Below are positions 1 through 60,321 of a stretch of DNA of 64,000 nt, piece by piece. The first letter of the stretch is position 1; each line of letters begins with the position of its first letter. Source of the stretch: Octopus sinensis (Eukaryota). The stretch covers positions 19,592,001 through 19,656,000 of the forward strand of contig NC_043002.1 in the NCBI RefSeq assembly GCF_006345805.1, given 5' to 3'. The notes under the pieces are model-generated. The model searched no databases and was not told where the DNA came from. It saw only the letters and a program-made list of their open reading frames with translations. The position numbers were made by a program, and so were the translations under genes.

Positions 1-2639
1 GGCTGACCAACAAAACCTCACACATTAGCAATGCATGAACATTGAACAAGACAAATGCATACTACATAAGCTCTTGAACCAGACATTCAGTTACTGGTGG
101 TTCCAATGTGACCATACCTGCAGAGTTTATCCCAAACAGGTAATGTGAAATACATCTAGTAACCACATGGCTATAAGTTCAAATCTAGATACTGTCACTG
201 TGTTGTACCTCCAAACAACAGAACCAGAACAGACAGAATTGTGCTTCCTTCACTCCAGTTATCCTGACTGAATAAAGGACAGCTTCCAATTGCTACTTTA
301 CAGACGAGTGGCCTGTGGTAGGAAGAAACGCATCCAACTGTAAAAACCATTACTCTACCAAAACACTCCACCCACCCATGCAAGTTTGGATAAGTGGATG
401 TAAGACAGTTAAAAATTTTTGTCTTTTTCAAATGTCTCATCTTTCAAAATATCTTTCTTCTCTTTTCCCTTGTATGAATGATTGAGGAAAGAAACCAAAC
501 CGTACTGGAATAAATATCTTTCAGTGCTTAGTTTTGTTCCTGTGTGTTTTTTTTTTGTTTTTTTTTTTACTTCAAGTTTTACTAAAGTTGATAATACCAA
601 CTTCATACAATCACCAAAATTTGAGGTATTGCGCTATTGTTAGAAATCATTATGTTCTGAGATCAAATAACATTGATATCAACTTTATCTTTTATACTTC
701 AGCGGTCAATTAAATACATTTTCTCTCTAATGTTGGGGTTGATTTAACTGACTATTTTCTCTCATAATTTTGTGGCATTGCACCTATACTAGAAATTTAT
801 TACCATTAGCATGCTGGACAAAATTCTTAGCAGGATTTTGTCTGTCTTTCTGTTCTGAATTTAAACTCCAAGGTTAACTTTGCCTTTCATCTTTTCAGGG
901 TCGATAAAATAAGTACCAGTCAAACACTGGGGTTGATACTGTCGACTAACTCCCTCCCACAAAAATTTCAGGCCCTGTGCCTTTAGTAGAAAGAATTATT
1001 ATTATGCAGAAATAATGTCAAGAGCTTCCTTTTGTAAATCAAGGATAAGACACATCTTTGAAACCTGAGATCTTTGTTAAGAAATATTCAGGCTTAGCAA
1101 AGATGTTCATAATTTTCAAAAAATGTTGAAGGTCTACAAAAATATCAAAGGTTATGTTGTTGTTATAATTTTCTAATTTTTTAAGAATTTGTTTGCTTTT
1201 ATTAGTATTTTTTTAAACCTCATGCTATGTTTATTTTTTTATTTTCTGTTGTTTTGTTTCTCATTCAACAGTTTATAATCACTGTTAATGTTATTGTTGT
1301 TTCATTAACATTTACAAATATTTCTAACTAAACTAACTGAAATTGTTTGCACACTGTCACCATTCACCTTCCACCATGTTCTGTATTCATACACACATGT
1401 GCATATATGTATGCATATATATATATACACACACACGTATGTATGTAAGTATGTATGCATGTATATGTGTTTGTATGTATGTATATATGTATATATATAT
1501 AATGCTAATATGTATAGCTATATGTGTATGTATTTATATTCCTCTGAAATGAGGGGCAAAGGCAAAGACAGATTTGTTTTTAAAAAAATCATGCACCACA
1601 TGTGATTAATAATTAATTCAATGAGCAGTCAGATGATGAAAACCTTTCCTATCGATAAGGAAACGAAACTAAAGAAGTCATAACATTTTGCAAGGAGGTA
1701 GGGGACATTTTTTAATTTTATTTTTTCAAGTCTTACAATTTATATTTTAAAATATATAATGAACTGTTTACATTTTCTGCAAGGCAGTTTCAATTCTAAA
1801 TTGAAACCAAATTCATTTGTACTCTAATGCCATTGAGCTTTGTAAGAGGTCTGGGTCTCACAGCTTCATTGTTACAACCCACCCTAGAACTATTTTCTTG
1901 TGCCTAAGATGTTATTATCAAAGAGAGATGGATTGGCAGTATTGGTAATGTGAATGACTTGCTTTATTTGGTTGCATTCCATTACATTCTGAGTTCAAAT
2001 CCCGGTGAGGTCAAATTTGTCTTTCCTCTTTCTGTGTTCAATAAAATTAGTACCAGTCATGTACTGGGGTCAGTTTAATCAACCTTGTTCCATCACACCA
2101 AAACCTTGTGCCAATATTTAAAATTATTATTTTTATTATTGTTGTTAAGGGTGGATTGGCAAAATTGTTAAAGCATCGGAAAAAATACTTGCAATATTTG
2201 TTCCAGCCCTCAAGTTCTGAGTTCAAATCCTGCCAAGATCAACTTTGCCTTTCATCTCTCCAGGAATGATAAAATAAGAAATCACTCAGCCACAATTTGT
2301 ATGTCAGACTTAACCACCTTTCTTCAAATTGCTGGCCTTGCACCTCAATTAGACATCCTTATTTTCTTTGAAATAATAATTATTGTTATCATTTTTAGGG
2401 CAGTAGATTGTCAGAATCAATAGAACTTGGGAAGAAAATACCTTGCAGTCCTTGTTCTGAGTCTTTTACATTCTCTATTCAAATCCTACCAAAATCAACT
2501 TAGCCTTTTATCCATTTGGGACTGATACTTTATCAATACAGTATCAGTCAAGTACTGGAGTTGATGGCATCAACTAACCTGCGCCTCTAGTCTTATGTGA
2601 AAAATTTTAATAATAATAATGATATCAATAATAGTTACT

Positions 2640-2985
2640 ATGTCATATAGTTGAGATAAGCTCGTAGTGAACAGTCTACAGCTCAACTTTGTATCCCAGC
2701 TGGAGCTTGCTAGCCTCGTCTGGCCCCTGTGCCAGTGGCACGTAAAAAGCACCATCCGATCGTGGCCGTTTGCCAGCCTCGTCTGGCACCTGTGCAGGTG
2801 GCACATAAAAAGCACCCACTACACTCTTAGAGTGGTTGGCGTTAGGAAGGGCATTCAGCTGTAGAAACATTGCCAGATCAGACTGGGCCTGGCGCAGCCT
2901 CCTGGCTTCCCAGACCCCAGTTGAACCGTCCAACCCATGCTAGCATGGAAAACGGACGTTAAACGATGATGATGATGATGATGGA
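2640..2985 (+). mobile_element. SINE or short LINE 3' end of the RTE-associated family
   Basis: Near-identical to the 3' UTR of the RTE LINEs (…aacccatgctagcatggaaaacggacgttaaacgatgatgat) and includes the ~55-bp internal repeats. Other copies: 9716-9980(-), 14018-14265(-), 17005-17140(-), 22011-22165(+), 24437-24595(-), 31385-31535(-), 33440-33665(+), 38480-38660(-), 60447-60635(-). Confidence 0.85.
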
Positions 2986-10014: not shown

Positions 10015-10160
10015 TTATAAGGTTGTCCCAAAAGTTCGTAGAAAGTCTTGGAAAATAATGGTCTTTATTTTGAGGAATAATTTTTGTTGTTTTTGTTAGT
10101 ACTTGGCGAGTAAAAATTCAATTTTCGCAAGTGTTTACGAACTTTTGGGACAACCTAATA
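10015..10160. mobile_element. Tc1/mariner-type MITE
   Basis: 21-bp perfect TIR AGGTTGTCCCAAAAGTTCGTA (10020-10040) / TACGAACTTTTGGGACAACCT (10136-10156), with TA-rich flanks. Confidence 0.85.
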
Positions 10161-12603: not shown

Positions 12604-12686
12604 TACCCACATTTCAGCATCAGGCACAAACTCACCACATAAGGTTTTACATTGGTGCCATCATTCAGGTATCAACTGAGTGTGCA
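12604..12686 (-). promoter_or_regulatory. SECIS element (type II) in SELENON 3' UTR
   Basis: AUGA-UGGCACCAAUGU-AAA-ACC(UUAUGU)GGU-GAGUUUGUGCC-UGAU. Has a UGAU/UGAU core, a GGCAC/GUGCC helix II, 12 nt from AUGA to AAA and an apical mini-stem. UCAGU/GCUGA can form helix I. Confidence 0.85.
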
Positions 12687-12861: not shown

Positions 12862-12952
12862 TTATATGTTTGGTCTCGTTTTGTACTTTAAACTATTTTG
12901 AAAACCTGTCTTCAAGAAATTTAAGTAAGACACGGTGGTTGGGTTTTGAAAC
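12862..12952 (-). CDS. SELENON: Selenoprotein N, terminal coding exon 8 (GFQNPTTVSYLNFLKTGFQNSLKYKTRPNI*)
   Basis: Not in the ORF track. Matches SelN C-terminus FEDPSTATYMQFLKEGL. Acceptor ctttctttatctccAG at 12953-12954, phase 2 fits exon 7. TAA at 12862-12864. Confidence 0.9.
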
Positions 12953-13490: not shown

Positions 13491-14471
13491 TGTATATATA
13501 TATATATATATATGTAAAGATGGATGTATAATGACTGAATTACAATTTCCTCATAGAATTTACTACATGTGCTCGCACACATTATTATTTGAAAGATTTT
13601 GTCCTTCTCTTGTCAAGAACTTGGTTGAGTACATCAAAGAAGTTTTGAGCTAAACATTTTAAGCAACAAATAGCAGTTCTGATATCCAAGGTCACATCAG
13701 ATAGTAGTATAAAAAAAACTTTTCTTGGAATATCTAACTGCAGCCTAAAATCCCTATCTTCACTAAAACTGCATCACAAAGGCATTTTTATTGTTAGTCA
13801 ATAAGACCCCCATTGCATATTTATCTTATAATTGAAGAATGGCATCACTGAATACAAGAGTTTACTGTTTCTGATTGTAAGAATGACAAAAGGGTGTCTG
13901 CCACTCAATACAGAATAAATAACTTAAGGGCTTCATTTGTAAGGATTTTTTTTTTGGTTCGCTTTCTCTCTGACATTTTATCTTTTGCTGACATTCATCA
14001 GTGAAAGATATATCTGCATATCATCATCGTTTAACATCCATTTTCCATGCTGGCATGGGTTGGGCGGTTCGACCGGGGTCTGGGAAGCCAAGAGGCTGCA
14101 CCAGGCTCCAGTCTGATCTGGCAGTGTTTCTACAGCTGGATGCCCTTCCTAACGCCAACCACTCCATGAGTGCAGTGGGTGCTTTTTACATGCCACCGGT
14201 ACAGGTGCCAGGGGAGGTTGGCAACGGCCACGATCAGTTGGTGTTTTTTACGTACCACCGGCATATATATATATAAATTCTGAGTTCCTATTCCTACCTA
14301 CCAAATTCTACTCATAAGCGTTACCCAACAGAGAGTGTAGCCTGGAGATAAGGGTGTTTCACTAGATTGAGTTGCTACTGCTCCACATTGAGAGGTCACA
14401 CCTTTGGTACTACAGACACATGGTTAGAATGCTGCAGAAAAGAATCACAAAATAAATTCTTGAAACCAGGA

Positions 14472-14963
14472 GACCATGACCAAGGTAGTTGGGCACCACA
14501 TGGTGTGGACCACGACCAAGGTAGTTGGGCACCACATGGTGTAGACCACGACCAAGGTAGTTGGGCACCACATGGTGTAGACCACGACCAAGGTAGTTGG
14601 CACCACATGGTGTAGACCACGACCAAGGTAGTTGGGCACCACATGGTGTAGACCACGACCAAGATAGTTGGGCACCACATGGTGTAGACCACGACCAAGG
14701 TAGTTGGGCACCACATGGTGTAGACCACGACCAAGGTAGTTGGGCACCACATGGTGTAGACCACGACCAAGGTAGTTGGGCACCACATGGTGTAGACCAC
14801 GACCAAGGTAGTTGGGCACCACATGGTGTAGACCACGACCAAGATAGTTGGGCACCACATGGTGTAGACCACGACCAAGATAGTTGGGCACCACATGGTG
14901 TAGACCACGACCAAGATAGTTGGGCACCACATGGTGTAGACCACGACCAAGATAGTTGGGCAC
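14472..14963. repeat. 36-bp minisatellite, 13 full units plus one partial, in SELENON intron 7
   Basis: Unit GACCACGACCAAGGTAGTTGGGCACCACATGGTGTA repeated head to tail without spacers. There is a G/A variant at AAG(G/A)T and one 1-nt deletion near 14600. Confidence 0.97.
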
Positions 14964-15883: not shown

Positions 15884-16047
15884 CCTGTATTCCAGAAGTC
15901 AGATGGAGCATCAAGGAGATCGTTGGCATTTACTTTATTCAAGATAGTGCCATTGGAGAGAGATACCATCATCATGACAGGAAATTTATAATTCTCAAGG
16001 AACATAGTTGCAACTTTAGCAGCCTCACCTTTGCCTTTCTTCAGATC
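15884..16047 (-). CDS. SELENON: Selenoprotein N, coding exon 7 (DLKKGKGEAAKVATMFLENYKFPVMMMVSLSNGTILNKVNANDLLDAPSDFWNT)
   Basis: Not in the ORF track. Matches SelN [30 protein letters not shown]. Acceptor acttcAG at 16048-16049, donor GG|GTATGG at 15883. 164 nt, phase 0/2. Confidence 0.92.
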
Positions 16048-17287: not shown

Positions 17288-17497
17288 CTCAAGATCAACA
17301 ACAAGGCAGGAAGTACTGATAAAGTGTTCCTTAAGGAAAGACATAACGGGCGAACTCTGGAGAGCAGTCTCTCGCAGGGTTCGCCCGGAACCTCAGCAAC
17401 TCTGATCATCTAGTACACCCCATAATATGATGGAGTGAACTAATTTCTGTACAGCCTGGGCCTTTTTAAAGGCTGAAGTAAAGTTGTAATAAGGGAC
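17288..17497 (-). CDS. SELENON: Selenoprotein N, coding exon 6 with in-frame Sec UGA (…[46 protein letters not shown])
   Basis: Homology continues in the same frame past TGA 17393-17395 (known SelN motif [26 protein letters not shown]). Acceptor ttttcAG at 17498-17499, donor GAG|GTAAGT at 17287. 210 nt, phase 0/0. Confidence 0.97.
17348..17386 (-). promoter_or_regulatory. Sec redefinition element (SRE) stem-loop
   Basis: GGGCGAACCCUGCGAGAG-ACUG-CUCUCCAGAGUUCGCCC: 8 bp, a C.A mismatch, 3 bp, a bulged C, 5 bp, then a 4-nt loop. Starts 6 nt after the UGA, as in vertebrate SELENON. Confidence 0.88.
17393..17395 (-). other. Selenocysteine codon (UGA, residue 501)
   Basis: In-frame TGA in the SCUG motif, 105 nt inside an exon, with conserved coding sequence on both sides. 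An SRE and a SECIS are present. Confidence 0.95.
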
Positions 17498-18801
17498 CTG
17501 AAAATATAATTCCGCGTTTAGTAGAAATTCAACATACAGGTACAATACACACAATATACATACAAAAAACACTATACACACACACACACTACACACACAA
17601 AATGGATGGCCATTGCTGGAACACTTTTTGTCATAGGTTTGCATAAGCAGGATTAAAATAGGGGCTAAATAATAATAATAATAAAGAATTTTTTATATGC
17701 TCACCTACATGTACAAACATATGCACACACAACTCAGAATATGTGTATTAACACAGAAACATCCTTTATATTGTGCACAATCATACATCACTTTTTGTAA
17801 TACACACATTGTATTATAATCTATGTCGTTTTTAGCCCAAGTTTATATTGTTTTTTTAGCCAAATTTTGGTTAACAAGAATCAAAAGTATTCCTACTGTA
17901 ACCATTCTATCTTTTTTTATTATGTTTCATTTATCTAATACAAGCTTAAAAACTGCACTTCACGCAGACTTTTAGTCTAACTCCTGCAGAGGGCTAATTG
18001 GGTCTGAGGCCCAAAACTAAAGAGAGCTAAAGAACATGACTATAATACATCTATAATGATTATATGCCCCAGTGGTGTTTGATCAGAAGTTAAGGACAGA
18101 TGAAAATTCAATTCTGGATTGCAATCATTCTATTGTTCCAGGCCCAAGTTGAATTCCAACTATTAGTCAATTTGTCCCAAAGTTTTCATCTTGACATAAA
18201 ATTAACAAAATTAATGTCATTTATCACACTCCTTCATCTCTGGCATCATCTGACAAATGCCAACCAAGAAAGCATGAATCAACCAAGCTTTACCTGCTAG
18301 AAATAGCAATCCAAATGCTTTTAAATCAAATCCTTATACTGGATGTTCAAGAACCAAATGAAGGGCAGATTTTCAATCCAGGGATCATCCTGATTCCAAA
18401 AAGGTATGATATTTCTATACGGAGCAAATGTAGTCTGAGATACAGGTGTCCCAGACAGACAGAATTCCACATTTATATAGATAGACTTTGATATCTTATA
18501 TTTTAAGATGATAGAGTATAATTTAAAGAAAATTTGACTGCTATTTCTATTATGTCGAGTGACTGTACAGAGGTTCTTATTGGTTCATTGGTCAAGCAAG
18601 CATGTAAAAGGCCCCTTCCTTATAATCTGCACAACTGCATTATGTAGGGTATATCATAAAACACTCACACTACATGACATAAATATGCACACACAATGTA
18701 TATAAACATACACATGGTCCGTTGCTTAGCAACAGTTCCAACAAACACACAATGCAAAAAGTCAAACAAAACAAATAAAATATTCTACTAAAGTAACCTA
18801 C

Positions 18802-19040
18802 TTCCTTAAAGGGAAACATTTTGACTTCCATACTTTTCATTGCTTCTTCCATGGAGATTTCTTCCGTCCATGAAATAGATGATATTTCTTGGTTGGTGAC
18901 CGCCTCATCAATACCTTCAAAATCAAGCTGGTTAGCGTGAACAGTAGATCTGCTGAGGGACTTCAGTTCCATTTTGGGTAGAAATCCAATGTTGACTTCC
19001 ATATTGACTTCATCAGCCACATTTGTCAGCCATTCCATGT
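18802..19040 (-). CDS. SELENON: Selenoprotein N, coding exon 5 (DMEWL...NMEVNIGFLPKMEL...ISWTEEISMEEA...MFPFKE)
   Basis: Matches SelN DMEWLY...NMEVDIGYIPQMEL...IKWQQELSWEEA...MYPFKK. Acceptor tttcAG at 19041-19042, donor GTAGGT at 18801. 239 nt, phase 1/0. Confidence 0.96.
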
Positions 19041-20082
19041 CTGAAAGACATACAGAGTTGTAAAACATGAAACGTTTGTATTGTGGGATGTTTTGCATGT
19101 ATGGGTATATAAGTTTGTGAAGGAGAGTATGTGTACATTTGTCTATGTATACATGGTGTGTTTGTGTGTGTGCAAGTATGTATAGGCATGCATGAGCATT
19201 TTTATGTGTGTATGCATGAGTACTTTCTAAATCCTATTGCATTATAAGATGCTGGCTTGAATATACCATCGTTGTCATCTCCATTGTTTTAACATCCACA
19301 TTTTCCATGCTTGCAGGAGTCAGATTTTTCCTATGGCTAGATGCCCTTCCTGTCACCAACTTTGGCTTGTGTCCAGGCAAGATAATACTTCACCAAGGCC
19401 TCACATGTGTTCTTGGAAGATTGGAAATGAAGGACTCTGCTTGAATGATAGTAACTCATAAGTATTCTATGATGTCAAGACAAGAACACACACACACACA
19501 CACATATGCAACAGGTTTCTTTCAGTTTCCATTTACCAAACCCACTCACAGGGTTTTATTGACCCAGCACCATAGTATAAGACACTTTCCATGCTGTGGG
19601 ACTGAATCCAAAACCACAAGGTCAAAAAGCAAACTCTTTATTCATACAGTCTTGAAACATTCTATCTTTCTTCAAGCTATATTCATAGAAGAATTTGAAG
19701 AACCCAGTACTAGGAGCATCTTATCCTTGCATATACTGATAGACTGTCTCAGCTTACAGTTGCTAATGACAGTTAGGTGTGGGGAGATAGCATAGGTGTT
19801 TTGGCTATGGGCACAGTGCAGTACTGGTGACAGGAAAAGAAACTATTTGAACTTTCAGCCAAGAAACCAATTTCCCCTTCAGTCTGGGTACCACTAATTC
19901 AAATGAGCAACACCCCATCAACAGGTTATACATTATTAGGGTTGTATAAATGTAGTTTATTCACACACCAGTCTTCAAATAGCATCATAAACACACAGAT
20001 ACACATACAGACAGACATATGCACACCAGGTATATAAACCACAACACAGCAATACAATATATTTTCACTTATTTCTACTAAC

Positions 20083-20234
20083 CAACATTGAGTTTATTGT
20101 GAGTTGGTACAGCAAGATTGAACTTCAGGAGAGATGTAGCATTTTTGTTGATGATGAGATTGCCAAAGAAATATGCTGGAGTGAACCAAAATGGAAGATT
20201 TGGTCGTTCATTCAGCTGGAACTCTGCATGTATT
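20083..20234 (-). CDS. SELENON: Selenoprotein N, coding exon 4 (RIHAEFQLNERPNLPFWFTPAYFFGNLIINKNATSLLKFNLAVPTHNKLNV)
   Basis: Strong match to SelN RIHAEFQLSEPP.FPFWFSPAQF. Acceptor catacAG at 20235-20236, donor GTTAGT at 20082. 152 nt, phase 2/1. Confidence 0.96.
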
Positions 20235-20332
20235 CTGTATGAATTAAAGATGGAAATGAGAAGAAAGAATATTTTAAATATGTAAACATGAAACTGAATA
20301 CTGAGGTTTTTGATATATACAATATTATACAT

Positions 20333-24193: not shown

Positions 24194-26824
24194 TTCTAAA
24201 ATTCTGATAATAACAAAACAAAGAAAAATAATAATGATAGCTATTGGTTTCAAATTTTGGCACATGGCCAGCAATTCCATAGGAAGGGGTCAGTTAGTTT
24301 CATCAACCCCAGTGCTTGATTGGTACTTATTGTATCAACCGCTCGGTGGAGTTTCAACTCAGAATGCAAAGCTGGAAGAAATGCTGCTAAGCATTTTGTC
24401 TAGAGCAGTAACAATTCTGCTAGCTCGCTCCTTCTATCATCATCATCATCATTATTTAACGTCCGTTCTTCATGCTAGCATGGGTTGGACGGTTCGACCG
24501 GAGATCTGGGAAGCCAGAAGGCTGCACCAGGCTCCAGTCTGATCTGGCAGTGTTTCTACAGCTGAATGCCCTTCCTAACGCCAACCACTCAGTGAGTGTA
24601 GATATTAATTTCAAATTTTGGCACAAGGCCAGCAATTGCAAGAAAGGGAGTAAGTCAATTACATCGACCCAAGTGCTCAGCTGGCACTTATTTTATCGAC
24701 CCCCACCAAAAGGATGAAAGGTAAAATTGACATCAGCGCAGGCGTGTTGCTAGACTTTGGTACCTGGGGGTGCTTCAGAATATTCTGGGTAGGCACAAAT
24801 TTGTATTGCAGGAAGATTTTTGTAAATTGTATTTTCTAAATCTGAGGGTGCACCAATAGTGAGGGAGCAGTGCAGTCTAGTGCCCCCCCTCCCCCCACCT
24901 CCTTAGTGACAGGCATGCCTTGGTGGGATTTGAACTCAGAACATACAGATGGACGAAATGCCACTAAGAATTTGGCCCAGAGTGTTAATTAATGATTCTG
25001 TCAGTTTGTCACTTTAGTAGTGATAGATATTGAGAAATAAAATCTCAATGAAAATCTGAGCGGCTGATTAATCTGAATAGATTAACACAGATTAGGAGAC
25101 AAATCATGACTTATTTCAGATTATCAAACAGATCATGTACAACTATGACTACAAAAATTATTACTTAAATCTCTGTGGTTTATGCCTGATGATAAGAAAG
25201 ACACATTTTATGTTTAACCCATAAAACGCTGGGATTTGCACTTACATAGCATGGACTGCTGAGCACATTTTATGACAATGAGGCTACTATGCACACATAA
25301 AAAAGCAAAAAATAGTTAAAATATCTTCTTAGTATATAATGGTAGCAAGTTCTACATCATCTGAAAAGTCATTAGTTGAACAATTAGTCCTCTTGCATTC
25401 TGGGGCAGTGGGAGGGTACCAGAGCCTTCAAGTGACATTAGACCCCAACAAATGCCCATAAGTTAAATGCATCTATCTGAGCCATGATTGTGGCCTGTTG
25501 ACCTGTGCTTGACAGCCACGATCTTGGCCCATCATGCTTTATGTATTAACATATATCAGTAAAATAACGTTGGACTGAACCTGTGATTTCTAAGCAATCT
25601 TTAACTTGTAACATTTACTTCTTGTAACTCTTATCCTTTGTGATAAAGGCATAAACATCACAACCTCTTTTCTCCAGCATAAATTTGGAGGTTATGCAAT
25701 GAATACAGGTTTTCCTAATGAGTCCTATCTTCTATCTTTCACTTGTTTCAGCCACTGGACAGTGGCCATACTGGGGCACTACCTTGAAGGGTTTAATTGA
25801 ACAAACAAAGCCCAGTACTTATTTTGGGGGTACGTTATGGGGTAACAATTGAATAAATAAGCATTGCATTTGACAGAATAATCTTATCACAAAGAAGCAC
25901 ACTTGTTGGCTTGCACTTGAACAGGTTTCTGTTTAGCCCCAAGCTGACTATGACTGAGCAGATCTGTAATCGAAGGTATTCCAACCATGACCAACCCTGC
26001 TTTTTATTTCCAAGCAGAGTGTACTCCTGATTATATTATCCATCAAATTATTGTTTAAAACAATAGAGTGTGATTTAAAAGAGATTTGACTACTGTTTCT
26101 GGAAAGCCAGGCAACAATGAAGAGGCTCCATTGAACAGGTTGAGCAAGTACAAAGAATTTCTGTAATTAGCTTATGCAATCTCTTTAGAAAAATTGTTGC
26201 TGTTATAAAAGTTTCTCTGCTGACTCCTATAATAATTATTTGAGTGATAACGATGATGATGATGATGGTGATGGTAATGAGTGAGGTGTTCCAGCAGAAG
26301 TGACAGGGCACCAAGCTTGATATCTAACCTTATTCAATTTTTTTCTTTCTAAACCAACTTCATTCAAGAAATTTTAAATGATTACAACTCATTTGTTATT
26401 CTTTAATGGCTTAAGTTAGAGAAATAAGGACTACTCCCATAACCCTTTTCTGAGACAGGTGGAAGGAAGAGATGAAGTTATCCTTAGACCAAAAACATGG
26501 CCCAGATCCTAGCGATAGGGCGGTCCCTGTTAAAGACACCACATATGAAGTGTAGTGTTAAATCCGGCAATGGATTAAATCTACCACCCAAGACCAGCAA
26601 TGGCTCTGATGACTTCCACAGCTTTCATAGGGAAACTTTCACTCACATGCATGATTACACCAAGGCTCTCATAGATGATATGTGCGCAAACAAATTTCTC
26701 AACCACCTAGTCATGCCTTCATTTACAGCATAGGACTGAGTCAATCAGTTAAATGTGGTCTTCTGCCAAAATAGCAATTTAAATATATTTCAAAGAACAT
26801 GAGATGTTACATGTTATCTCTTAC

Positions 26825-27186
26825 CTAAAAGCTATGTCCACAAACTCAGAATTGTATGCTCTAACGCAAGCCACAGCTCCTTGTGGTTCAAAACGCGACA
26901 GGAGAAATGGGCGTGGGTGAAACATAGAAAGGAGACTGTGAAAAATAGCTTGGTTGTCTTTGAATAGAGATGGAAAATATCTGTTGCTGCTTGGCATCTG
27001 TCCAGTGATGTACTGGAATCTACTGCCCTCCCACAGTGTGTAGACTTTACCCACAGAGTTCATGAAATCTGGGTTGGTTGGCAGAAAAGGTTTGAAGTGT
27101 TTAGCAGAATATATCATGAGATTCTTCGCTGGTTTTTTCCATTCTTTGAGTCCAGAAAAACACTTCTGAGTTTCCATAATCTGTTC
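26825..27186 (-). CDS. SELENON: Selenoprotein N, coding exon 3
   Basis: Translates CFSGLKEW...HFKPFLP...SNRYFP...IFHSLLSMFHPRPFLLSRFEPQGAVACVRA, the hallmark SelN segment. Acceptor T-tract AG at 27187-27188, donor GTAAGA at 26824. 362 nt, phase 0/2. Confidence 0.96.
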
Positions 27187-28645: not shown

Positions 28646-28756
28646 ACCTTCCTCAATAATCTTCTTCATGGTAGAAGGTGTAAGAGGAACAAAGCTGGCC
28701 TCCACCACTAATGCTTCATCATCAACATCAAACTGGAAATTATACTCGATTGGAAC
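28646..28756 (-). CDS. SELENON: Selenoprotein N, coding exon 2 (VPIEYNFQFDVDDEALVVEASFVPLTPSTMKKIIEEG)
   Basis: Not in the ORF track. Polypyrimidine acceptor ttccttctccAG at 28757-28758 and donor GTAAGT at 28645. 111 nt, phase 0/0. Resembles SELENON EETLTIEARFQPLLPETMTK. Confidence 0.9.
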
Positions 28757-39691: not shown

Positions 39692-40225
39692 CCTGACGTC
39701 AATTAATCTATGGGTAATCGGAATAAATTCATTTAAAGACAAATAACCGTCTTCATCAAAGTCATATTGGTCGAACAACGTCAGTCCCGCCTCGCCTACG
39801 CTGCCCAGAAGTTCTTGCTTGGCATTTTCGTAGTTCAATTTCTCAATTGATTTCTTGTACAAAATAGCAACTACAGCAACAATGATGCTCAACCAAAACA
39901 ACCAGGATTTCATATACTTCATGCAGTTAAAAAATTTCATTTTTATTTTTGAATCGCCAGTTTTTTTGCCTTTCTTATTTTGCATTCGTTGGTCTTTCGT
40001 GACATCATTGCGGTTCGAACTCGAGTTGGTATTTACATCTCTAGAAAAGTTATCGGAATTCCGATGAGAAGAAGAAGCAGCTTCCTTTGATTTCTTCGGT
40101 GAACTCTTGTTTGTCTGTCGGTTCCTTGATTCAGGATATTTAGGACTCGGTGGAATCGTCTTATTGCCTAACTTGGCAGGAGACCGCGTAACGACGGAAC
40201 CAGAAGGCCCCGTCGTACTGGCCAT
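39692..40225 (-). CDS. SELENON: Selenoprotein N, coding exon 1 (aa 1-178: long basic N-terminus, TM helix, EF-hand)
   Basis: ATG at 40225. The ORF-track start at 40258 is a GTG. Translation has a TM segment WLFWLSIIVAVVAILY, then ELLGSVGEAGLTLFDQYDFDEDGYLSLNEFIPITHRL, resembling SELENON [35 protein letters not shown] (recalled). Donor AGG|GTAAGT at 39691, phase 0. Confidence 0.9.
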
Positions 40226-45419: not shown

Positions 45420-47540
45420 GCGCGTAAGTATGTATGTGTGTGGATGTGTGAGTGTGTCTGTGTGTATGTCTGGGTGTCAGTGTGTCCGATGAATGTATGT
45501 GAGTATGTGTGTATATATGTGTGCATAGATGTATGTCCGTGTGTGTGTGTGTATGTGTATGAGTGTGTATGTATGTACGTGTGGGTGTGTGGAAGTGTGT
45601 GTATGTGCATGTGTGTGCGCGTGCATACAGGTGTGTGAGTGAGTGTGTGTGTGTGTATGTATGTGTGAGTGTGTATGTATGTGTGTGTAGGATGCATGTA
45701 TGTGTATGGGTGTATGTATGTGTGTGTGTGTGTATGTATGTATGTTACGTGCGTGGTGTGTGTGTATGCTGTAGGTGTGCGCGTATGCATGCATGCATGT
45801 GCGTATGTGTGTGTGTGTTGCATGTGTGTGGGTATATATGTATGTGCGTATATGTGTGTGTATGTGCGTACATGTGTGTGTGTGTAATGCATGTGTGTGT
45901 AGTAGGTGTGTGGCGTGTGTGTATATAGTATGTATGTAAGTATGTATGGGTGTGTCCGTGTATGTGTGTGTATGTATGTGTGTGTATGTAGGTGTGTGGG
46001 CGTGTGTATATGTGTGTGTATGTGCGTACATGTGTGTGTGTGTATGCATGTGTGTGTATGTAGGTGTGTAGGCGTGTGTGTATAGGTGTATGTATGTAAG
46101 TATGTATGGGTGTGTCCGTGTATGTGTGTGTATGTATGTGTGTGTATGTAGGTGTGTATATGTGTGTGTATGTAGGTGTGTGGGCGTGTGTATATAGGTG
46201 TATGTATGTATGTCTGGGTGTGTCCGTGCATGTTTGTGTGTGTGTGTATGCATGTGTATGTAGGTGTGTGTGTACGTGTGTAATGTATGTGTGTATGCGT
46301 GCGTGTGTGTATGTAGGTGCGTGTGTATGTGTGTGGGAGTGTAGGTGTGTGTGTGCGTGTGCGTGTTTATGTTGGTGTGTGCGTATGTGAGTGTGAGTGT
46401 ATGGGTGTTTGTCATGCATGTGTGTGCGCGTGCAGGTGAGTGTGTGTGTAAGTATGTGTGTGTGTATGTTTGTGTGAGTGTGTATGTGTGTATGTCTGTG
46501 TGTATGTATGTGCGTATAGGAGTATGTAGGTATGTGTGTGTGTATGTGTATGGGTGTATGTATGTATGTATGTGTGTGTGCATGTGTATAAGTATATGTG
46601 TGTGTGCGTATGTGTGTGTATGTGTGTGTGTTTATGTATGTGTGTATGTATGTGTGTAGGCGCGTGTGTGTAGATGTATGTATGTATGGGTGTGTGTCTG
46701 TGTGTGTTTGTGTGTGTGTGTAGGTAGGTGTGTGTGTCTGAGTGAGGGTATGGCTGTGTAGGTGTGTGTGTGTGTGTATGTGTACGTGTGCGTGTGTATG
46801 CGTGTGAGTGTGAGTGTATGGGTGTATGTCTGAAGTAGGTATGTGTGTGTATGTATGTATGTGTGTGTGTGTGCGGGTATGTGTGTGTGTGTGTGTATGT
46901 GTGTGTGTGAGTAGGTGTGCGTGTATGTATGTGGGTAGGGATGCATGCGAGTGTGTGGGTATGTATGCATACATACGCACGCGCACATCCGAAGCAAGCC
47001 CACACACACGAAGCGCGCTCACGCACACAACGCACAAGCAGTACAACGCAAGCCCAAGGGGCCGACCAAGCCCCCAGCGCGCCAAGGCGCGCGAGCGCAA
47101 AAGCCCTCGAACGCCCCGCTACGCGGGAACCGAGGATCCATCAGCCAAAACCGGAAAGCAGAAAAGAGGGGGGGCTGCCTGGATGCAAAAGGGGTATGTG
47201 TGTGTGCATTCAGTGTAAGGGTGTGCATGTGTGGGTATGTACGTATGTGTGTGCCTACATGTATGTGTGCATGTGTGTGTATGTGAAGTATGTACGTGCG
47301 GTGTGTGTGTGTGAGTGTGTGTGTATGTATGTGCGTATGTATGTGTGTATGTATGTGTGTATGTATGTCTGTGTGTGTGTGTGTGTAAGTATGTATGTGT
47401 GTGTGTATGTATGTATGTGTGTGTGTATGTGCATGTTGGTTTGTATGTTAGTGTGTGCATGTATGTCTATAAGTGTGTGTGATTAAATGTGTGAATGTAT
47501 GTACGTAGATGGGTCTACGTATGTGTGTGTGTGAACAGGC
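45420..47540. repeat. Compound (GT)/(AT)/(GTAT) low-complexity microsatellite block
   Basis: Long imperfect dinucleotide repeats. Source of the spurious H/T/Y and V/C/M ORFs. Confidence 0.95.
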
Positions 47541-48983: not shown

Positions 48984-49569
48984 AAATAAAAAAAAAAATA
49001 AAAAATAAAAAAAATAATAAAAATATAATAAAAAAAAAAAAATAAAAAATAAATAAATAAAAAATAAAAAATAAAAAATAAAAAATAAAAAATAAAATGG
49101 TGCACATACATACATAAACACATATACATACACACACACATACGTACACATGTGTGCCTATACATACCTACACATACACACATACATAATATATATATAT
49201 ATATATATTATATATATAATATATATATATATATATACACAATCAAATACAGGCCCATTCCCTAATTTTAATTTTATTATCTTCATTTATTACTTTTGTT
49301 ATCTTTGATCGCTAGGGCTAAGGATCCTGGCGATGGCAGCATGTCCAATTGTCTGTCTACTAGAAGGCAAGTACTCGTTCCCGCACGCACACTCATTAGC
49401 ACGTACATACACCCATTCGTACACTCATACACATACACGTACGCACGCGTTATATTCATACATACAAACATCTACATACGTTCACGTATATACACATACG
49501 TACTCGTACCTACAGATTCATGTCTACACTTTAGGAGGCTAGTCTATATATATACACCAATAAATATAC

Positions 49570-49602
<33 letters not shown>

Positions 49603-49679
49603 CACATATACACATACACACACACACACACATATATATACTCCTACATACAGATACATACCCATATATATATACATAT

Positions 49680-49752
<73 letters not shown>

Positions 49753-49992
49753 TATACATACATACACACACACACATATATATACACACACATACATACA
49801 CATATATATACATACACAAACATATATACACACATATATATATATACATATATACACACATACATACACACACCTACATACATATACACACAAACACATA
49901 CATACGTAAACATACATACATACATCCATACATCCATACTTACATGCATTTATACGCATACATACACCCCCATCTATATATAATATATATAT

Positions 49993-50034
<42 letters not shown>

Positions 50035-50314
50035 TCACACATACATATACAAATATACGCCCACACATACATACATACACGTATACGCATACACGCACAT
50101 ACACATATACATGCGTACCCATACACGTGCACACACGCACATGCATCCATATATATACACACACACACATATATATACACGTGTGCAAGCATACATACAT
50201 ACTCATACACGCACACATACTTACATATACATATATGCACACACTTACACACATATATACATACACATATACATGCATACATACATATATGCATACATAC
50301 ACACACGCGCACTC

Positions 50315-50353
<39 letters not shown>

Positions 50354-50576
50354 CATACACACATATATATATATATACATATATATACACAAACATATAT
50401 ATACACATATACACATACACATACATGCACACCTACACACACATACACATACACATACATACATATATATATATATATATACACATATATACACATATAC
50501 ACATACATATATACACACATACATACATATACATACACACACACATACATACATACACGGATACACATACCCATAC

Positions 50577-50608
<32 letters not shown>

Positions 50609-50828
50609 GTATACACATGCATATACTTATATCTCTACATACTCACATATAAACATATATATATATACACACACACATACATATATATACATGTACACAC
50701 ACATACACATATACATACATATATACACATACACACATACATATATATATATATATACACATACATATATATATACATACATATATACATACATATATAT
50801 ACATATACATATACCCCCACATATATAC

Positions 50829-50865
<37 letters not shown>

Positions 50866-51924
50866 TACATATACACATATACATGTATACATACGCAATA
50901 ATGATACACATATATATACACATACACACACACAGACAGATGCATATACATACATATATATATATATAAATTACATATCTATATAAATACATACATAATA
51001 CACATATACCTTTTCTCCTAAGACCTTTCACATATTGTATGTGCACGCTTGTATATGTGTATCGTATGTATGTATATATGTATAGAAATGCATGGGTACA
51101 GTAGGAATATACGCATGTATTATGTGTGTGTGGGTGTATGTATGCATGTAAAAAAATTATATATGTATAGTTTGCATATGTGAATATATATATATATATA
51201 TATATGTATGTGCTTGTATGTGTGTGGTGTGTGTATATATGTATATGTGTTTGTATGTATATGTGTATATACGTGTAAATGTATGTGTTTTTATGTGTAT
51301 GTATGTAAAAATATTATATATATTTAGGGCTTAGTAAAATAAAATAAATTACTTTGCCACATACTAAACTTTCTAGAAATAGCAGCCAATAAAGGTTTTT
51401 AGCCTCTTCCACTACTTAGAGAATTTTTTTCCCTCTAACATTGTTTACTCAAAATAATAAGGGTCCCTTTACATACTGAATTCTTGGTGAATTTGATTAA
51501 TAACTAATTAACTTCACCCTCCCCTGTTGATATATATATGATGTATATGTGTACATGTATGTATATATATGTGTGTGTGTGTATGTGTGTATGTATGTAT
51601 TTGTACATGTGTGTGTGTATATGTATGTGCGCGCGTGTGTGTGTATGTATGTGTATGTATATTTGTATATGTATGTGCATGTGTATGTATGTGTGTATAT
51701 ATATGTATATGTATGTATATATATGTATATATATATATATGTATATATATGTGTATGTATATGTATGTATATATGTGTGTGTATATGTGTATTATGTATG
51801 TATTTATATAGATATGTAATTTATATATATATATATGTATGTATATGCATCTGTCTGTGTGTGTGTATGTGTATATATATGTGTATCATTATTGCGTATG
51901 TATACATGTATATGTGTATATGTA

Positions 51925-51961
<37 letters not shown>

Positions 51962-52030
51962 GTATATATGTGGGGGTATATGTATATGTATATATATGTA
52001 TGTATATATGTATGTATATATATGTATGTG

Positions 52031-52061
<31 letters not shown>

Positions 52062-52183
52062 ATGTGTATATATGTATGTATATGTGTATGTGTGTGTACA
52101 TGTATATATATGTATGTGTGTGTGTATATATATATATGTTTATATGTGAGTATGTAGAGATATAAGTATATGCATGTGTATAC

Positions 52184-52219
<36 letters not shown>

Positions 52220-52444
52220 GTATGGGTATGTGTATCCGTGTATGTATGTATGTGTGTGTGTATGTATATGTATGTATGTGTGTATATATGTATGTGTATA
52301 TGTGTATATATGTGTATATATATATATATATGTATGTATGTGTATGTGTATGTGTGTGTAGGTGTGCATGTATGTGTATGTGTATATGTGTATATATATG
52401 TTTGTGTATATATATGTATATATATATATGTGTATGTATGTATG

Positions 52445-52475
<31 letters not shown>

Positions 52476-52755
52476 GAGTGTGCGTGTGTGTAGGTATGCA
52501 TATATGTATGTATGCATGTATATGTGTATGTATATATGTGTGTAAGTGTGTGCATATATGTATATGTAAGTATGTGTTGTGCGTGTATGAGTATGTATGT
52601 ATGCTTGCACACGTGTATATGTGTGTGTGTGTGTGTATATATGGATGCATGTGCGTGTGTGCACGTGTATGGGTACGCATGTATATGTGTATGTGCGTGT
52701 ATGCGTATACGTGTATGTATGTATGTGTGGGCGTATATTTGTATATGTAATGTGA

Positions 52756-52813
<58 letters not shown>

Positions 52814-53033
52814 GATGGGGGTGTATGTATGCGTATAAATGCATGTAAGTATGGATGTATGGATGTATGTATGTATGTTTACGTATGTATGTGTTTGTGT
52901 GTATATGTATGTAGTGTGTGTATGTATGTGTGTTATATATGTATATATATATTGTGGTATATATGTTTGTGTATGTATATATATGTGTATGTATGTGTGT
53001 GTATATATATGTGTGTGTGTGTATGTATGTATA

Positions 53034-53102
<69 letters not shown>

Positions 53103-53179
53103 ATATGTATATATATATGGGTATGTATCTGTATGTAGGAGTATATATATGTGTGTGTGTGTGTGTATGTGTATATGTG

Positions 53180-53212
<33 letters not shown>

Positions 53213-53539
53213 GTATATTTATTGGTGTATATATATAGACTAGCCTCCTAAGTGTAGACATGAATCTGTAGGTATGAGTACGTATGTGTATATACGTGAA
53301 CGTATGTAGATGTTTGTATGTATGAATATAACGCGTGCGTACGTGTATGTGTATGAGTGTACGAATGGGTGTATGTACGTGCTAATGAGTGTGCGTGCGG
53401 GAACGAGTACTTGCCTTCTAGTAGACAGACAATTGGACATGCTGCCATCGCCAGGATCCTTAGCCCTAGCGATCAAAGATAACAAAAGTAATAAATGAAG
53501 ATAATAAAATTAAAATTAGGGAATGGGCCTGTATTTGAT

Positions 53540-60029: not shown

Positions 60030-60321
<292 letters not shown>

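Follow-up and report, generated by a model that had tools for sequence, protein, structure and literature searches.

A stem-loop 6 nt downstream of the selenocysteine codon of octopus SELENON, a probable orthologue of the Sec redefinition element

The coding sequence of the octopus selenoprotein N gene (SELENON) contains a stem-loop that starts 6 nt 3' of the Sec UGA codon, and we consider this hairpin, with a probability of nearly nine in ten, to be an orthologue of the SELENON Sec redefinition element (SRE). It lies on the minus strand of a 64,000-nt stretch of the Octopus sinensis genome (contig NC_043002.1, positions 19,592,001 to 19,656,000; hereafter the window), and its plus-strand coordinates, read from the sequence, therefore run downward. 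The vertebrate SELENON (SEPN1) SRE goes back to Howard et al. (2005, 2007) and Maiti et al. (2009), whose work is outlined in PMC8704476 and PMC6844570; EvoFold arrived at it independently from an alignment of eight vertebrates (PMC1440920). The SRE is thus already known as a kind of element; new here are its reach to Cnidaria and the amino acids that track the wobble base of the opposite arm, which together represent a modest extension.

The octopus SELENON gene and its hairpin

Exons were mapped using the tblastn program with a human SELENON sequence, which served as a lead only, and splice sites were read from the DNA. This search placed seven SELENON exons on the minus strand, from 39823 down to 15910. 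In a protein search, the assembled N-terminal part (385 aa) matched 'selenoprotein N-like isoform X2 [Octopus vulgaris]' with 100% identity. The upstream part of the gene, placed by similarity, consists of an EF-hand exon at 39704-39823 and of coding exons at 28661-28729, 26824-27162, 20084-20239 and 18790-19041 (all minus strand). The exon with the Sec codon and the SRE (VPYYNFT...DDQSC-U-GSGRTL...VVDLE) occupies 17288..17497 (minus strand; tblastn, with splice sites cag/GTC ... GAG/gtaagt). Two further coding exons complete the gene on the minus strand: the penultimate one (DLKKGKGEAAKV...DFWNTG) at 15884..16047, placed by tblastn and splice sites, and the last one (FQNPTTVSYLNFLKTGFQNSLKYKTRPNI) at 12862..12952, which carries the stop codon TAA at 12862-12864 and matches the recorded product. 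The spliced 103-aa C-terminal product has an exact match in the O. vulgaris assembly GCA_951406725.2 (OX597819.1:114348952-114356308); the look-up of this product matched that genome record only, with no octopus transcript contig among the matches. Judged by this similarity, the gene carrying the octopus hairpin is SELENON.

A SECIS-like element with AUGA, apical AAA and the UGAU core was detected in the 3'UTR by Rfam SECIS_1 (12611..12672, minus strand), about 190 nt past the SELENON stop codon and about 550 nt downstream of the UGA in the mRNA. Its score of 21.5 bits is under the gathering score of 35, with the conserved motifs aligned at high posterior probability. As for current annotation, that of GCA_951406725.2 cuts SELENON (window 12862-39823, L066) at the UGA into a 500-aa and a 103-aa model. 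Most SELENON proteins in the databases likewise end ...DDQSC, because gene callers read the UGA as a stop.

Several repeats were also observed in the window. A 36-nt tandem repeat (13.7 copies, 98% identity; window 14471-14963) lies in the intron between the last two SELENON coding exons. Long, degenerate microsatellite blocks (TGTG, ATAC, TATATG, AT) occupy window positions 45431-46933, 49566-51002, 51531-53222 and 60032-60319, and they account for the extreme GC- and AT-skew at 44-54 kb of the composition profile. In addition, a near-perfect inverted repeat at window 10016-10160, with about 27 nt per arm and arms 91 nt apart, resembles the remnant of a MITE-type transposon; on both strands it gives a mir-548-like match below threshold.

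Read on the minus strand, the RNA of the hairpin region is 5'-UGC UGA GGU UCC GGG CGA ACC CUG CGA GAG ACU GCU CUC CAG AGU UCG CCC GUU-3'. The Sec codon UGA (17395..17393), recognised from the sequence and the tblastn exon, is in frame in the context UGC UGA GGU, and the 6-nt spacer GGUUCC (17392..17387), which encodes Gly-Ser, separates it from the stem. The SRE stem-loop comprises 39 nt (17386..17348, minus strand) and was delimited by its fold, a synonymous-recoding null, covariation and a covariance-model match. In the predicted fold, the lower stem joins GGGCGAAC (17386..17379) to GUUCGCCC (17355..17348). Above it follow a mid-stem mismatch of C17378 opposite A17356 (pair 9/31), a middle stem of CUG (17377..17375) with CAG (17359..17357), a bulged C (17374), an upper stem of GAGAG (17373..17369) with CUCUC (17364..17360) and the loop ACUG (17368..17365), all on the minus strand. 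The three stems together contain 8 + 3 + 5 = 16 bp, and an extra basal C-G pair (17387 with 17347) is predicted by RNAfold. An earlier note on this DNA had described a 16-bp stem 6 nt past the UGA with one C.A mismatch, a bulge and an ACUG loop, and the coordinates obtained here match that description exactly. The minimum free energy (MFE) of the 66-nt context is -31.9 kcal/mol, compared with -18.7 +/- 3.1 for dinucleotide shuffles (z = -4.2), none of the 200 shuffles being as stable.

Conservation, codon choice and covariation of the hairpin

We compared 36 distinct SELENON Sec-exon sequences from genomes, Logan transcript contigs and JGI metagenome contigs. For loci whose proteins end at ...DDQSC, the DNA past the UGA was fetched. 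Homologues from named genomes are those of Lottia gigantea (L058) and Branchiostoma lanceolatum (L059). The transcripts comprise two clusters nearest to octopus, probably from other cephalopods (L052-57), as well as urchin-like (L060), pectinid-like (L061), mytilid-like (L062) and further bivalve-like (L063) sequences and, for vertebrates, a mammal-like (L064) and a cichlid-like (L065) one. The JGI metagenome contigs were scanned once with the back-translated pattern TGYTGHGGNWSNGGNMGNACNYTNMGNGA, which left the synonymous positions of the 5' arm free and did not touch the 3' arm. A total of 51 loci (L001-L051) were obtained, among which 34 are true SELENON Sec exons (26 distinct). No Cys form of SELENON occurs among these 34 matches, all of which carry TGA, though the pattern admitted TGT and TGC. 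One of the scan loci (L027) is cnidarian, since it clusters at at least 90% identity with Clytia hemisphaerica proteins. Most of the comparison sequences carry no organism label; their independence is argued from the named anchors, and the statistics given below are not tree-aware.

The same hairpin, starting 6 nt past the UGA, is present in 34 of the 36 distinct sequences, with folding energies of -22 to -36 kcal/mol. The other two (L040 and L013) are very divergent SELENON-like sequences that also fold 6 nt past the UGA, with a different geometry. The former (2837-2899, plus strand) forms a 30-nt hairpin in which the 5' arm GGGCGGA is as elsewhere and the 3' arm UCUGCCC is 9 nt nearer, in a different codon register (V-L-P versus S-S-P); a protein search for relatives of this divergent protein matched L040 itself only. 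The latter (469-531, plus strand; 72% G+C) forms a longer hairpin stem. In six further mollusc or mollusc-like sequences, 11 of the 12 pairs of the lower stem are retained, with MFEs of -28 to -35 kcal/mol. Third-position variation that breaks the stem in other molluscs, which the earlier note had named as evidence that would speak against an SRE, was found in none of these six. The comparison shows the SRE to be common to cnidarians and bilaterians, beyond the vertebrates. In the literature naming the element we found no discussion of an invertebrate SELENON SRE, the taxa of the original phylogenetic analysis lying outside that scope.

With the vertebrate SELENON SRE, represented by the mammal-like and the cichlid-like transcripts, the octopus hairpin aligns without gaps. 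The gene and the codons (G-R-T-L-R-E-x-x-L-x-S-S-P) are the same, as are the 6-nt spacer, the 39-nt span and the presence of one mid-stem mismatch. The octopus lower stem is identical in sequence to that of the cichlid-like transcript, whereas two 3'-arm bases and one 5'-arm base differ from the mammal-like one. The mismatch is found at 9/31 in octopus but at 10/30 in vertebrates, where octopus has C-G and vertebrates have C.A. Pair 12/28 is G-C in octopus versus C-G in fish and mammal, a true double change. The upper stem of octopus is shifted in register by one base, with the bulged C and a 4-nt loop, compared with a 5-nt loop in vertebrates. The compensatory changes relative to vertebrates that had been proposed for this hairpin are therefore real in substance, as seen in the double change at pair 12/28 and in the re-paired upper stem. 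The mammal-like transcript differs from the human sequence given in the earlier note solely in AGC CCG versus AGU UCG.

Conservation of this kind could in principle arise if the hairpin were a by-product of a highly conserved peptide and the RNA itself were unselected. The peptide is indeed strongly conserved, and codon positions 1 and 2 alone yield about 6 of the 12 lower-stem pairs. When the sequence was recoded synonymously with uniform codons so as to keep the octopus peptide, however, the recodings reached -13.7 +/- 3.5 compared with -33.1 for the native sequence (z = -5.6; 0/1000), and with octopus SELENON codon usage 0/2000 reached the native MFE, so that none of 3000 recodings in all was as stable as the native hairpin. 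Likewise, 33/35 aligned sequences form between 10 and 12 of the 12 pairs in the lower stem, against an expectation of about 6.2 if the protein sequence alone is considered. Codon choice is near-fixed inside the stem only: Gly+3 is GGG in 29/32 and Thr+5 is ACU in 26/32 sequences, and the 3'-arm residues Ser+13, Ser+14 and Pro+15 are encoded by AGU (28/29), UCG (19/19) and CCC (24/28), respectively. By contrast, the codons of flanking Gly, Ser and Leu residues vary freely; for example, four codons are in use at Gly-8 (entropy 1.8 bits), as at Ser-2. Furthermore, amino acid replacements at codons +13, +14 and +15 follow synonymous changes in the opposite arm. We regard an origin as a mere by-product of the peptide as scarcely credible.

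The covariation set consisted of the 12-bp lower stem and three RNAalifold pairs, and was complemented by per-sequence folding. A fully symmetric 17-bp consensus had been considered and was dropped for its poor fit in the upper stem (for example, pair 29/35 forms in only 5/35 sequences); a fixed consensus under-describes this part because the upper-stem register shifts between lineages. In the 33-sequence alignment without octopus, 94.3% of cells pair, compared with 88.2% after column shuffling (0/500 shuffles reach the observed value), and sliding the register by 1 to 3 columns leaves a pairing of at most 54%.

In pair 6/34 (alignment columns 18/46), the Arg+4 wobble base meets the base that opens codon +14. 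The two are paired in 33/33 canonical sequences (A-U 12, G-C 8, G-U 8, C-G 2, U-G 2, U-A 1), with all four Watson-Crick types and both wobbles represented, and their covariation is significant by permutation (P < 5e-5). Residue +14 tracks the Arg codon: CGA occurs with UCG (Ser), CCG (Pro) is always opposite CGG, CGC or CGU occurs with GCG (Ala), and CGU with ACG (Thr). Four states of this pair were observed within molluscs (A-U in octopus; G-U in the cephalopod-like pair; G-C in Lottia and in the pectinid-like and mytilid-like transcripts; U-A in the bivalve-like L063) and two within vertebrates (mammal-like G-C, cichlid-like A-U), which means that the switches are repeated events. In addition, pair 9/31 flips from U-A to A-U together with a Ser to Cys replacement (L004, L014), and pair 3/37 is found as G-C, as C-G (GGC/GCC in L042 and L012) and as A-U (L039). 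Selection on RNA structure over and above coding, as the earlier note had suggested, is strongly supported across the 33 to 35 sequences by the recoding nulls, codon fixation and covariation.

A covariance model built from 33 non-octopus sequences has one strong match in the window, at 17336-17398 on the minus strand (77.1 bits, E about 1e-17). The next match, at 24 bits, is the reverse strand of the same stem, and all others are below 10 bits. No Rfam family matched 17336-17398 even at E <= 10, and none matched ten homologous loci at gathering scores. Rfam 15 seems to have no family for the SELENON SRE.

Which molecule has been selected can also be read from the alignment. G-U pairs are common in several of its columns, and because such frequent wobbles would be A.C mismatches in the antisense, the selected molecule is the sense RNA. 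We dropped a plus-strand reading of the octopus hairpin: no ORF runs that way, the 24-bit reverse hit reflects the symmetry of the stem, and the G-U pairs of the relatives fit the minus-strand RNA only. Introns provide further information. In B. lanceolatum (L059, 17084-17558), an intron of about 470 nt starts 1 nt past the UGA (TGA G/gtaac), and the SRE is located in the next exon. Two other sequences, L012 (minus strand, starting at the match 820-848) and L035, have the SRE loop interrupted by a 51-nt intron (ACA G/gttaaa...tttag/TT CTC); after splicing, the arms GGCCGAACUUU and AAAGUUCGGCC pair with -23.5 kcal/mol and a GGC/GCC base. Thus, it takes splicing to create the 6-nt spacing of Branchiostoma and to make the stem-loop of L012 and L035 a compact 39 nt, and the conserved geometry belongs to the mature mRNA. 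Overall, the comparison shows that the RNA structure itself, as part of the sense strand of mature mRNA, is under purifying selection throughout eumetazoans. The SRE identification first put forward from the octopus DNA is borne out with regard to the SELENON orthologue, the SCUG motif context, the start at 6 nt, the homology to vertebrates and the covariation.

Putative role in UGA recoding

Functional tests concern the human SRE only, whereas the octopus element is known by its sequence. The stem, loop and spacer of the human SRE inhibit termination and stimulate Sec insertion (PMC8704476, PMC6844570), and with no SECIS present the element still favours readthrough at other stop codons (PMC6844570). 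SRE mutations found in patients lower recoding as well as SELENON mRNA and protein levels (PMC8704476, PMC6844570, PMC3541580). From the human element we infer a role of the octopus SRE in UGA recoding. While the UGA occupies the A site of the ribosome, the hairpin base would be positioned at the mRNA entry channel, where it would disfavour termination. This would give better odds of Sec insertion by the SECIS, SECISBP2, eEFSec and Sec-tRNA machinery recruited by the 3'UTR SECIS, and the hairpin would probably also keep the mRNA from being handled as a transcript with a premature stop. SREs might act either sterically at the ribosome or through the binding of a factor.

The RNA structure might instead be selected mainly for a role other than UGA redefinition, such as pausing the ribosome to allow folding or insertion into the membrane, influencing how stable the mRNA is or where it is localised, or defining the exon. 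The strength of the hairpin suffices to slow a ribosome regardless of the upstream codon, and the functional data come from the human element. Such a role, however, would have to accommodate a start fixed 6 nt past the UGA in all lineages and a UGA that is kept in every homologue found. The spacer and the flanking UGC UGA GGU are conserved too, even at synonymous sites: the preceding codon is UGC in 32/32 sequences, never UGU, and the following Gly is GGU in 27/32. A role at the pre-mRNA or DNA level is excluded by the intron positions, and human mutagenesis connects both termination and Sec insertion with the stem, the loop and the spacer (PMC8704476). We therefore consider a main role outside recoding unlikely and retain UGA redefinition as the preferred reading.

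A separate idea is that the octopus stem is also an ADAR substrate, in which A17356, opposite C17378, would be converted to inosine, closing the sole mismatch of the SRE and recoding a conserved Ser to Gly. An A.C mismatch within a duplex is a favoured context for ADAR, and cephalopods recode heavily. Gly also seems to be tolerated at this codon, as the cephalopod-like sequences L056 (1830-1892) and L057 read GGU where octopus has AGU; the G in these two may be either genomic or an edited A. On the other hand, the 5' neighbour G is disfavoured, and with 16 to 17 bp the duplex is short. Unrelated taxa, too, have a mismatch at 9/31 (C.A in L006 and L009; A.A in the mytilid-like transcript and in Branchiostoma), and so the octopus mismatch can be explained without editing. 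In vertebrates the mismatch is at 10/30 instead, and its occurrence at one or the other position across taxa indicates that a mid-stem weak point is a general feature. Editing of A17356 thus appears very improbable. If it did take place, however improbably, the efficiency of Sec insertion into SELENON would be tunable by RNA editing, and a close relative with the GGU codon would represent a hard-wired version of the edited state.

Related recoding signals and significance

Stem-loops and pseudoknots that stimulate stop-codon readthrough from the 3' side lie about 6 to 9 nt past the stop codon. Such signals resemble the SRE in their comparable spacing and stability, but they lead to the insertion of a standard amino acid via near-cognate tRNAs rather than of selenocysteine. 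The bacterial SECIS is similar to the octopus hairpin in being an in-frame hairpin just 3' of the Sec codon. It is, however, essential and directly recruits the elongation factor (SelB), whereas octopus has a SECIS-like element within its 3'UTR, and the SRE of human is auxiliary. Mariotti et al. speculate that the bacterial SECIS and the SRE are related by descent (PMC4561486). The SREs of SELENOT, SEPHS2 and SELENOP (SRE1) and the hymenopteran readthrough element (HRE) are likewise coding stem-loops within about 10 nt of a recoded UGA, and they stimulate recoding without being essential for it (PMC5727441, PMC4561486). Going by their descriptions, these elements are set apart from the octopus SRE by unrelated sequence and by their location in other genes, and some of them overlap the UGA.

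The octopus SRE reveals no new mechanism. The element is nevertheless among the few functional RNA structures known within animal coding sequence, and mutations of the human SRE cause SELENON-related myopathy. The comparison yields a natural mutagenesis table, which lists the pairs that may change and how they do so, together with a ready alignment and model for a family absent from Rfam. The SRE can also be used as a marker of the Sec exon where annotation splits SELENON, as in the O. vulgaris assembly. For SELENON itself, the SRE limits which codons are used and, at positions +13 to +15, has an influence even on the amino acid.
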